Part shown: positions 66 to 2,665 of the stretch, one piece after another
How the letters are laid out: each line of letters opens with the position of its first letter
Numbering within the stretch: position 1 is the stretch's first letter
From: Oikopleura dioica
Taxonomy: Eukaryota; Animalia; Chordata
Direction of reading: 5' to 3'
Length of the DNA stretch: 64,000 nt
NCBI GenBank assembly: GCA_907165135.1
Contig: OU015566.1
Coordinates: forward strand, 6,944,001 to 7,008,000
The notes under the pieces: generated by a model
What the model was told of the DNA's origin: nothing
Databases searched by the model: none
Seen by the model: the letters and a program-made list of their open reading frames with translations, nothing else
Program-made: the position numbers and the translations under genes

Positions 66-2665
66 TTATTCTGTAAGGAGTACAGTAAGATGAGCAAAGA
101 AAACAGCAGCGCAATGATTAAAAATCGAAAAATGGAATGCTTGCCAAAGTAGCCGGCAGAAAGCCGAGAAGTCAACACGGAGGAAAATAAGAATCAAATA
201 TGTATCGATGAGGATGGGTGATTGGTTATTTATTACCTGTACAGAGCCATCGGCGCCTGTCACCACTTCGATAATGCGCGGCCGCTCGATCACTGTCGCA
301 TCTCCTTCACCGTCTTCGACGATTCCGACGATCCAAGCTTGGTGGCCCTCGATTCGTCGCAGCTCGGCGCAAAATTTCGCAGCCTGAATGACTCCAATTG
401 AGTTCGCGAAATTGGAGAGCTTATGATCAATTTCTGCTCGCCAAGCAGTTTCAAGAATTGTATAAAAATAAATTATACATAGCAAGAGTCAGGACGAAAA
501 ACCACGAGTCAATCCTCATTTCACAAAGAATTAAGTAACCTCACTGTGACAAGAATCAATCGATAGTATAGTTTCAGGGCATTAATCATTTACAGCTCTT
601 GCTTTAATTTGGCACATAAGCTCAAGCCAAGAGGATTTGTTATTTCCTACCTCTTCGCGAGGGAGGGCAATGAGCATCCCTCCGGAGATTTCAGGAGCGA
701 CGCCTTTTGCTAGACCGAAGGAATTGCCCATTGCTTTCGCGATCGTGTTCATTTTCGCGAGAACCGGCAGATTGTGGATCACAAAGTTGACCTTTTTCTT
801 CTGTCGCTTTGCAAGGAGTTTAGCGTGACCCAGAATTCCGTAGCCTTGTAAGTTTAAAAAATAATGAGTAGATTCTAGCATGGGTTCGAGTTACCGGCGA
901 CAGCTGTTGCGCCATGCGCGTTGAATTGAGCCATGAAGCGTGAGGCGTCGCGATTTAATCTCACCATATTAAACATTGCATCCTAAATAATAAATTTCCT
1001 TCTTCCCGAGGATCGCTCATCAATTTAAAATGAAATTTGTGAGGAGATAATAACCAATGTTTCTATTCGCCAAACATATTACAGTAGAGTCTATTCAAAA
1101 GACTATAATCAGATTGAGAATATTTCAGACTAACGACATAATTGGCAATTATGATGGGTAGGATGACTGGACTGTCAAAAATACACTAATTCTTCTGGAA
1201 CTGAATAATTGGCTGATAGAGTGGTCGTCTTTTGCCCAAATTGTCTATTGCCCAACTTGGGTAAAAGTCGGCCTGGGAAAAAGTCCTATCCTCCGACAAA
1301 CCTATGAATGTCAAATCGTTGAATTCCTCCTATTGAAGGAAATGCCCTCAAAGAACCATTTTTTCCAAAATTAACATAAGGGGTCAGATCTGAAAGTAAG
1401 GAGAGCTTACCTGATAGCCTCGTTCGACATCCTGTTCGGTAACAACTTGCTTCAGTCGATTCCATTTTTCTTGGTTCTGTTCCATCCACATATGCGCCAT
1501 ACACGCCACGTGAGTTCCAAGTGGCTTCGTTAAGACTAATTGGTTGATTTAATTAACGGGAGCTTATTCAATCTCCTTCTATGGATTGACCGAAAAACCT
1601 TACCTAAGACATCGCCCTTTTGTGCCGCGTCGGATGCCACAAACTCGCGACTGCCAACGTTCATGAACGCATTTACTTGACCAGAAATGGTCAGTGACGG
1701 GTTCAGCGCAAGCGGCGACTGGGTCATTATTGCGTTTGCCCTTTCACAGCATTCTTGAAAACCAGCCACGATCTTTGGAAGGACAACATCGCGTTCACGG
1801 TCGGACATTTTCGTCGACGAGGTCATCAGAAGATTGACTGTTTCTACTTCAACGACTCCAGCGGCGTAGATTGGGGCAAGACAATGAGCACATGCTGCTT
1901 GACCGGCTATGTGCGGGTCGTCTACTGGTGGCAGGGTTTGAAATCTGACGAGCTCACGAGCACGTGAGCACGTGAGTGAGCTCGATGAGCATGCTCACGC
2001 GTGCTCATGCTCACAGAATTCTGGGCCCCTCGTGCTCACGCGTGCTCATGCTCACTGAAATTTGAGCAGCCCCGTGCTCACGCGTGCTCGTGCTCACGCG
2101 AAATATTCAGATTTCAAACCCTGACTGGTGGGTAAACGACGTCTACAGTGAGTTTCTTACTGTTACTTTCGGAAAGAAAAAGAGGATCAACTCGTTTGAA
2201 CTCACAAAATGAAACCTTCCTGATGCGACAAAGATATCCGTGAATCCATTCTTACTGCGGACAATCTGACAGGAGCCTGAGACTGCGCGCGGCGGAGGGT
2301 AAGTCGACTTCTGAACGACTGAAGCTTGTTCAGGAGATGCTTCAGGCGGCGATCGCTCCAGGAGTTTTTTATTGACCTCGGCAGGTGCACGGCAAGCGCT
2401 TCCCAGAAGATTGGAAAACCTTATTTGCTCAGTTAATGCGTAATTTTGCTCAAAGTTCAAACTGTCCAAAGATAGCCTTATTGATTCTGCCTTCAATAAA
2501 GGACATAAAAGTGTCGAGAAGTGGCTTGAACTCTTCTATTATTAAAAAATCAGCCGCTGGCAAAACTTTATGCGAGTATGAATGTGCATAAGTAACTCAC
2601 CTGGTGAGCCTGAATGATTCTTCTAGCCCTGAGGAAACCGGGTCGAAGAGTTTCCCCACGGACAT
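66..2665 (-). CDS. Selenophosphate synthetase-like protein (SPS1-like, probable pseudoenzyme), multi-exon; interrupted by a MITE; last exon may run past the window start
   Basis: Spliced peptides [22 protein letters not shown] / [21 protein letters not shown] / [29 protein letters not shown] / [12 protein letters not shown] / [11 protein letters not shown] / [12 protein letters not shown] / [13 protein letters not shown] / [14 protein letters not shown] / [18 protein letters not shown] are colinear with metazoan SEPHS1/2. Confidence 0.92.
1932..2123. mobile_element. hAT-type MITE (192 bp) inserted in a SEPHS-like coding exon
   Basis: Perfect 17-bp TIR cagggtttgaaatctga / tcagatttcaaaccctg; 8-bp TSD actggtgg at 1924-1931 and 2124-2131; internal gtgctcacgcgtgctc repeats. 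Confidence 0.92.

Follow-up and report, generated by a model that had tools for sequence, protein, structure and literature searches.

SPS1, named SEPHS1 in vertebrates, is a form of selenophosphate synthetase (SPS) which has neither selenocysteine (Sec) nor cysteine at the Sec position and occurs beside an SPS2 gene encoding Sec. In flies as well as mice SPS1/SEPHS1 is an essential gene, and mutations in it occur in a human neurodevelopmental disorder. What the protein does at the molecular level remained obscure until 2025, when it was identified in the co-regulator Zincore. To our knowledge the nucleotide site is intact in all well-studied SPS1 classes, which raises the question whether the second function of the protein needs this site. 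Here an SPS homolog with a largely dismantled active site is described from the larvacean Oikopleura dioica. The gene lies on the minus strand at the beginning of a stretch of 64,000 nucleotides, called the window in the following (assembly GCA_907165135.1, contig OU015566.1, positions 6,944,001 to 7,008,000; positions in the gene are counted from the first letter of the window). In the public annotation of the Okinawa genome (OKI2018_I69, chr1) it is g1826, with a protein of 617 amino acids (P0160) bearing the UniRef name 'selenide, water dikinase'. Over its first 8.6 kb the window matches the reverse strand of OU015566.1:6936581-6952665 in every base.

In ascidians (Ciona, Styela, Botryllus) an SPS-ae/SPS1-Gly form coexists with a Sec form, carries a C-terminal extension and keeps K32, D69, T85, D87, D110, the GGQ motif and D265 (human SEPHS1 numbering is used throughout). 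A previous survey placed the origin of this Gly isoform at the ascidian root, assigned a single SPS2-Sec gene to O. dioica, and used Ciona SPS-Gly successfully in a rescue of Drosophila SelD-ptuf (Mariotti 2015, PMC4561486). Our literature search did not find the O. dioica paralog in that survey, nor any other paper linking Oikopleura with SEPHS. Vertebrate SEPHS1 (SPS1-Thr; PDB 3FD5/3FD6 and 9HJT) has a complete ATP/metal site, was crystallised with nucleotides according to the entry titles, and has no glutamine-rich tail. In structure 9HJT human SEPHS1 and QRICH1 sit together on a zinc-finger factor and DNA; Zincore has been described as a co-regulator to which QRICH1 contributes a long glutamine-rich region and a DUF3504 domain binding SEPHS1. 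Insect SPS1 (Drosophila SelD/patufet), which occurs beside or without SPS2 and is non-catalytic for selenophosphate by annotation (NCBI 'inactive selenide, water dikinase-like protein'), has K32, GGQ, and every Asp ligand in 65/65 sequences. In clitellate SPS1-Leu (for instance of Helobdella robusta), which goes back to a duplication of its own (Mariotti 2015), two or at most three of seven ligand positions are changed, with K32, D69, GGQ and D265 kept. Among six SPS1-Leu proteins (P0231, P0239, P0246, P0248, P0255, and P0218) D87 is replaced by Ser or Cys in 6/6 and D110 by Asn in 5/6. Partial loss of metal ligands is thus already present in a described SPS1 class, and the view of the initial annotation of this DNA that SPS1 paralogs generally keep these aspartates is correct for SPS1-Thr, SPS1-Arg, and SPS1-Gly but not for SPS1-Leu with its D87S/D110N.

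To collect orthologs of the Oikopleura gene, a profile search with exon 3 was followed by a word search with a full-length match (P0002). Eleven larvacean orthologs were obtained, three from O. dioica lineages and eight from other forms, nine of them near full-length; most are full-length open reading frames (ORFs) on transcript contigs, which were assembled from samples of Logan and the Joint Genome Institute (JGI). The ortholog P0159 aligned by HMMER with full-length human SEPHS1 (9hjt_F) over residues 6–377 with an E value of 5e-110 and only three short gaps, and a MAFFT alignment of 118 sequences, comprising the 11 orthologs and 107 other metazoan SPS, agrees with it; an almost gapless match to metazoan SEPHS had been noticed initially. 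The Sec loop G-T-G-C-K of human SEPHS1 reads G-S-A-C-R in the Oikopleura protein (K32R, C31 being kept), GIGMD reads AVSGS (G67S, D69S), QTTD reads VASD (T85A, D87 being kept), LSDLY reads LAPIY (D110P), TGGQT reads TQSPL (GGQ161-163 to QSP), and ATDIT reads ATAVA (D265A), while PRIIEV including R371 is retained. The loop and the SGS, LAPIY, and ATAVA losses as well as the retention of PRIIEV had been read from the window before and are upheld by both alignments and by the ortholog cDNAs; G67S, T85A, and the change of TGGQT to TQSPL extend this list.

The aspartates 69, 87, 110, and 265 are reportedly the metal ligands of the enzyme; a literature search gave no usable source for their numbering in the human protein, and they are assigned here by alignment with a Leishmania enzyme. 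A list of ATP-phosphate ligands is available for Leishmania SEPHS2, consisting of a Lys, an Asp, Thr95, Asp97, Asp120, residue 173, and Asp279 (PMC7595633), and was mapped by alignment to human K32, D69, T85, D87, D110, Q163, and D265. Six of these seven positions are altered in all 11 larvacean orthologs where covered, compared with 0–3 changes in the 107 other metazoan SPS. Position 29, the Sec site, is Ser or Ala, and the loop G-[S/A]-A-C-R with Arg in place of K32 is found in 9/9 orthologs covering it. Every ortholog covering the respective site has D69 changed to Ser, Asn, or Gly, T85 to Ala, D110 to Pro or Ala, Q163 to Pro, and D265 to Ala or Glu, with D87 kept. Arg32, Ser67, Ala85, and Gln-Ser-Pro161-163 are fixed across the larvacean orthologs, whereas positions 69, 110, and 265 vary. 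Among 173 columns which are nearly invariant (at least 95%) in the 107 other metazoan SPS, the larvacean orthologs have without exception lost 38, and these losses are concentrated in the N-domain (30/75 columns versus 8/98 in the C-domain; Fisher p 7e-7).

A separate SPS2 with an in-frame UGA, the search for which had been recommended, does exist. With a degenerate DNA pattern derived from the O. dioica SPS2 in the supplement of Mariotti 2015, which holds the OdB3 SPS2, a complete SPS2 was found on the JGI metatranscriptome contig Ga0123377_1042450 (L009), with an in-frame TGA in a G-U-G-C-K loop and an intact active site. A stem of the type AUGA...AA...UGAU in its 3' untranslated region (L009:100-170, minus strand) resembles a Sec insertion sequence (SECIS), as seen by eye and with a weak fold z-score of -1.2. 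The Rfam SECIS models (E<=1) gave nothing in the paralog cDNAs and nothing in the genuine SPS2-Sec mRNA L009 either, which makes this test uninformative and marks Rfam as a poor SECIS detector for this animal. G67, D69, T85, D87, D110, GGQ, and D265 are kept in 12/12 larvacean SPS2. These form a second clade with a stem of 1.19 substitutions per site compared with 1.06 for the paralog clade; since a clade with an equally long stem still keeps the ligands, their loss in the paralog exceeds what the fast evolution of larvaceans brings about.

The arginine of PRIIEV behaves in the opposite way. R371 is invariant in the 107 other SPS and kept in 11/11 paralogs, but it is lost in 12/12 larvacean SPS2, where Gln, Lys, Glu, Thr, or Gly is found instead; the OdB3 SPS2 gene ends in ..HEVQIIDV. 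In the paralog, identity to vertebrate or ascidian SPS1 amounts to 32–35% (N-domain) and 62.5% (C-domain), and in SPS2 to 50–54% and 47–48%, respectively. The losses in the two proteins are thus reciprocal: SPS2 keeps the ligands without R371, and the paralog keeps R371 without the ligands. At the level of single messages, the SPS2-Sec mRNAs L009, L010, and L011 each retain the whole active site and lack the arginine. Drosophila SPS2 has lost the equivalent of R371 too (..DVEFIEV in the Mariotti alignment), mirroring larvacean SPS2, and a young SPS2 retrocopy of Botryllus has kept it.

Spliced ortholog transcripts were found in many independent runs and represent two O. dioica lineages besides this one as well as at least seven further larvacean forms. 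It had been considered that real transcripts or correct splicing might restore the Asp and Lys residues; the 11 orthologs share the losses wherever covered. Expression of the gene is thus documented by RNA reads and many transcript assemblies from sister lineages, not from the Okinawa lineage itself, for which no transcripts were found among the members of the protein cluster. RNA runs labelled O. dioica map to the window at 90–95% identity only and must therefore stem from a sister lineage. Differences between these reads and the window are mostly synonymous; ten of them fall across the SGS segment in exon 2 and leave the amino acids unchanged. The ratio of nonsynonymous to synonymous substitutions (dN/dS; Nei-Gojobori, 380-codon core, cDNA comparisons) was 0.024–0.027 when this lineage was compared with the other two of O. 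dioica, with dS near saturation at about 1.4, and 0.045 between the latter two (dS 0.39). When the pairwise distances were split, the branch to this genome received a value of about 0.02. The degenerate N-domain, with 0.02–0.03, is as constrained as the C-domain, and SPS2 as a control yielded 0.04–0.11 among O. dioica lineages. Purifying selection on the paralog, its degenerate N-domain included, is as strong as on the true SPS2-Sec gene, and values of 0.02–0.05 are far from the dN/dS near 1 of a simple pseudogene.

In a maximum-likelihood tree the paralog clade groups with ascidian SPS with a support of 99/100, apart from larvacean SPS2; monophyly of all tunicate sequences was not rejected by the approximately unbiased (AU) test (p 0.31). 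A C-terminal extension, PR[IV]IEV.T..DG[ST]VQS[AV]PP..RR followed by a glutamine-rich region, is found in ascidians and the paralog but not in larvacean SPS2 or vertebrates, and lends independent support to orthology with the ascidian gene. In its sequence the paralog is a non-Sec, non-Cys protein beside an SPS2-Sec gene and thus an SPS1, namely, an extremely derived member of the tunicate SPS1 line bearing Ser or Ala at the Sec position. The initial annotation had set it apart from the described SPS1 classes. This needs amendment as far as descent is concerned, because it groups with ascidian SPS-ae/SPS1-Gly by tree and tail motif, but stands with respect to the active site: judged by the alignments it departs from SPS1-Thr, SPS1-Arg, and SPS1-Gly, where all ligands are kept, and goes well beyond clitellate SPS1-Leu, with which it shares the loss of metal-ligand aspartates as such. 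Compared with the ascidian protein, its nearest clade, it has lost six of the ligands and GG161-162, has Ser or Ala in place of Gly, and carries a tail about twice as long. With vertebrate SEPHS1 it shares the fold, R371 with PRIIEV, most of the C-domain and a non-Sec residue beside a true SPS2, and with insect SPS1, which is annotated as inactive despite intact ligands, a presumed lack of selenophosphate synthesis. The published history of tunicate SPS, with SPS2 as the sole gene of O. dioica and an origin of the Gly isoform at the ascidian root, is thereby revised.

The degeneration of the N-domain is also evident from profile scores. Pfam AIRS reached 22.3 bits in P0159 (cut-off 24) and 28.7 in P0002, compared with 53–56 in normal SPS, while AIRS_C was intact with 68.5 bits in P0159; on single exons Pfam yielded just a weak AIRS match in exon 3. 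With TIGR00476 (selD, equivalog cut-off 125) P0159 scored 131 and P0002 147, hardly more than the cut-off, in comparison to 266 for ascidian SPS, 304 for vertebrate SPS1, and 212 for larvacean SPS2, and with NF010705 and NF002098 the paralog remained far under both cut-offs. An AlphaFold2 model with a pLDDT of 86.5 superposed on 3FD5 with a TM score of 0.95 at 47–49% identity; normal SPS were part of its input alignment, and what it speaks to is the predicted fold. The PurM-like two-domain SelD fold is thus predicted to persist. By its sequence the protein is an SPS homolog by descent which lacks what characterises a functional SelD, namely, the loop with Sec or Cys and Lys and the ATP/metal ligands.

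Taken together, the protein is probably a larvacean member of the tail-bearing tunicate SPS line, to which ascidian SPS-ae/SPS1-Gly belongs, that has become a non-catalytic protein of the SPS1 type. The proposal that it is a fully non-catalytic SEPHS kept for a scaffolding role is supported by the ligand losses, the dN/dS of 0.02–0.05, the transcripts, and the separate SPS2; that it is non-catalytic and that it acts as a scaffold is what we infer from sequences. Two ancestral functions would have been split between the genes, synthesis of selenophosphate remaining with SPS2 and binding or scaffolding dependent on the C-domain and R371 with the paralog, which would no longer make selenophosphate and would act by binding partners. 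The most likely partner-binding role would be one akin to that of vertebrate SEPHS1 in the zinc-finger co-regulator Zincore (SEPHS1:QRICH1), with the paralog's own glutamine-rich tail contributing. Such a role, suggested tentatively here, would fit the retention of R371 and the C-domain, the empty catalytic site, and the tail; in Zincore the glutamine-rich region belongs to the partner QRICH1, whereas the larvacean paralog carries its own. R371 is presumably important for Zincore or in disease, and according to the initial annotation human SEPHS1 disease variants cluster at this Arg; a literature search on this point found nothing. A more far-reaching version, which we consider rather doubtful, would be a natural separation of function in which SPS2 performs the chemistry only and the paralog is a single-chain co-regulator resembling Zincore that may replace or bypass QRICH1. 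If separation of function is true, the ancestral second function behind the repeated births of SPS1 would need neither binding nor hydrolysis of ATP. A strongly selected ortholog lacking the nucleotide site beside an SPS2 lacking the invariant arginine offers a direct test of this question: should the paralog rescue loss of SPS1 or bind the same partners, catalysis would be dispensable.

Several observations weigh against a non-catalytic member of the tunicate tail-bearing line. A duplication specific to larvaceans was not rejected by the AU test (p 0.17), and the link to Zincore is drawn from homology and R371. D87, C31, and Arg32 remain and Glu stands at position 265 in larvaceans other than Oikopleura, so that residual binding of a nucleotide or metal is possible, and a remodelled ligand site would likewise account for the invariance of the replacement residues QSP, Arg32, and Ala85. 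The latter points lead to a different explanation, that of a neofunctionalised enzyme which has kept the ability to bind a nucleotide or some other small ligand but carries out a new reaction; the fixation of Ser67 with the other replacements as well as an N-domain under constraint as tight as the C-domain speak for it. We regard it as improbable, since three of the four metal-ligand aspartates are lost, positions 69, 110, and 265 vary (S/N/G, P/A, and A/E) as released positions do, the score of the N-domain profile AIRS collapses, and Gly161 and Gly162, invariant in 107 other SPS, have given way to bulkier residues. The suspicion that a normal SPS merely looks degenerate due to a wrong gene model or alignment can draw on a public annotation which is partly wrong, skipping 19 amino acids, and on an incorrect 3' end in the initial annotation. 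It is refuted by continuous ORFs with the same substitutions in independently assembled cDNAs from at least seven samples and by concordant HMMER, MAFFT, and structure-based alignments, and retains practically no probability.

A further explanation concerns the Okinawa copy, which might be a young pseudogene in which an exonic transposon blocks the normal protein while the orthologs elsewhere are functional. At positions 1932–2123 (no strand assigned; 1924–2131 with its target site duplications) a miniature inverted-repeat transposable element (MITE) of 192 bp is found, with the terminal inverted repeats CAGGGTTTGAAATCTGA, perfect over 17 nt and 76% identical over 41 nt, and a perfect 8-bp target site duplication ACTGGTGG at 1924–1931 and 2124–2131, 200 nt apart. 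It has no coding capacity and is called hAT-like from just the length of the duplication and the CAG start of the inverted repeats. A second copy with different flanks was present in the metatranscriptome X1. Ortholog cDNAs lack the MITE and run unbroken through the insertion point, from which it follows that it landed inside a coding exon. The interruption of an exon at a site covered by no RNA of this lineage counts against an intact protein, as do the failure to find an Okinawa transcript in the protein collection and the dinucleotides TC..AG or GT..CA needed for its exact removal. The annotated model accordingly resorts to a splice from GT(2255) to AG(1925) joining 2256 to 1924, which stays in frame but deletes 19 residues including D87. 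Two other in-frame solutions are GT(2215)..AG(1945), replacing DVVYPP by GRFQTLPP, and, following the regular GA intron, GG(2121)..AG(1925), by which one Ile is gained and D87 retained. One contig of X1 has its acceptor at 1563, and a premature stop would then cut the ORF short; the contig has a depth of 2, and only 16 letters extend beyond the junction. Against inactivation stand the remaining exons, which are intact with no other frame break, the dN/dS of about 0.02 on the branch to this lineage, the existence of three in-frame splice solutions with GT..AG or GG..AG ends, and the tolerance of O. dioica for donors with G followed by a base other than T; inactivation of this copy is therefore held to be quite unlikely. 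The reads, being from a sister lineage, carry no information on splicing of the MITE in the Okinawa genome. From its position the element is a candidate for an intron born from a transposon in a strongly constrained gene; the O. dioica genome is known for its unusual introns.

The gene structure was rebuilt from three-frame translation and splice sites and checked with spliced ortholog cDNAs and RNA junctions; the contigs L002 and L003 from O. dioica sister lineages were aligned exon by exon to the window. All exons are on the minus strand. Exon 1 (2601–2665) starts with the ATG at 2665 and encodes 21 residues followed by (R), identical to the start of P0160, in a region where the two cDNAs align over 2604–2707. 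Intron 1 (2420–2600, 181 nt, GT..AG) is cDNA-supported. This intron and the upstream sequence were searched in all three frames for an alternative exon encoding Sec in a loop of the GCK type, as present in Ciona SPS-ae, and none was found. Exon 2 (2220–2419) holds the loop LLGSACRAP, with Sec replaced by Ser, Gly by Ala, and Lys by Arg, and AVSGSCQIV with G67S and D69S; its end at 2220 appears as a loose end in RNA reads and also in cDNA. Intron 2 (2143–2219, 77 nt) has noncanonical GA..AG ends, and the position of its junction agrees with ortholog cDNA and reads; 11-12% of the introns of O. dioica are other than GT/AG (PMC8008620). D87, rightly named by the initial annotation as the only metal-ligand Asp that can be retained, resides in a mini-exon of 18 nt (2125–2142), (D)VVYPP(V), which had not been delimited before. 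Ortholog cDNA is collinear across exon 2, the mini-exon, and exon 3. The 19 codons which P0160 skips to avoid the MITE, with an Ile in their place, are contained in the ortholog cDNAs.

Exon 3 (1604–1924) comprises a segment of 23 residues with D110P and one of 11 residues with GGQ changed to QSP, and matches human SEPHS1 at E 3e-18; a contig of X1 is 100% identical over 1604–1757. Intron 3 (1536–1603, 68 nt, GT..AG) is cDNA-supported. The X1 contig joins 1604 to 1562, so that a GT..AG intron of 41 nt is removed instead of the 68-nt intron, and reads ..GDVLAPVN before a stop. Exon 4 (1411–1535), consisting of (V) and 41 residues, is covered by RNA reads and cDNA. Intron 4 (983–1410, 428 nt, GT..AG) corresponds to the junction 981->1410 in RNA reads of three runs, which also yielded joins of exons 5 and 6 and of exon 2 and the mini-exon. 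Exon 5 (895–982) contains an 11-residue segment with D265A and is followed by intron 5 (845–894, 50 nt) and exon 6 (651–844), the two exons being joined by loose read ends at 897 and by cDNA. Exon 7 (237–383, 49 residues) retains R371 of PRIIEV. The gene had been placed at 66–2665, and its start at 2665 was correct. Its end at 66 resulted from reading through intron 7 (60–236, 177 nt, GT..AG), which contains the stop codon at 66–68; the coding sequence splices from 237 to 59, as the cDNA jumps from 237 to 62–22. The tail rich in Gln, Ser, and His begins in the exon at 1–59 (SAPPSSSSSRRGK...) and leaves the window, comprising about 230 amino acids, with the coding sequence running about 1.4 kb past the start of the window.

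Among the SPS proteins one sequence with a very long branch, P0032 (402 amino acids), has no Sec loop (..FGDLNERSQKTPKD..) and Ile for D265, with D87, D110, GGQ, and the C-terminal Arg kept, and may be a second, independent degenerate SPS. The tails of the larvacean paralogs (P0160, P0158, P0159, P0156, P0002, and P0151-P0157; L001 8665–10085) consist of short conserved islands in low complexity sequence: LTELQPTT in about half of the larvacean tails, TLTP/TPVT, which occurs in ascidians too, and at the C-terminus a basic stretch, HRRNPNV or RHSTS. By their appearance these islands look like linear binding motifs.

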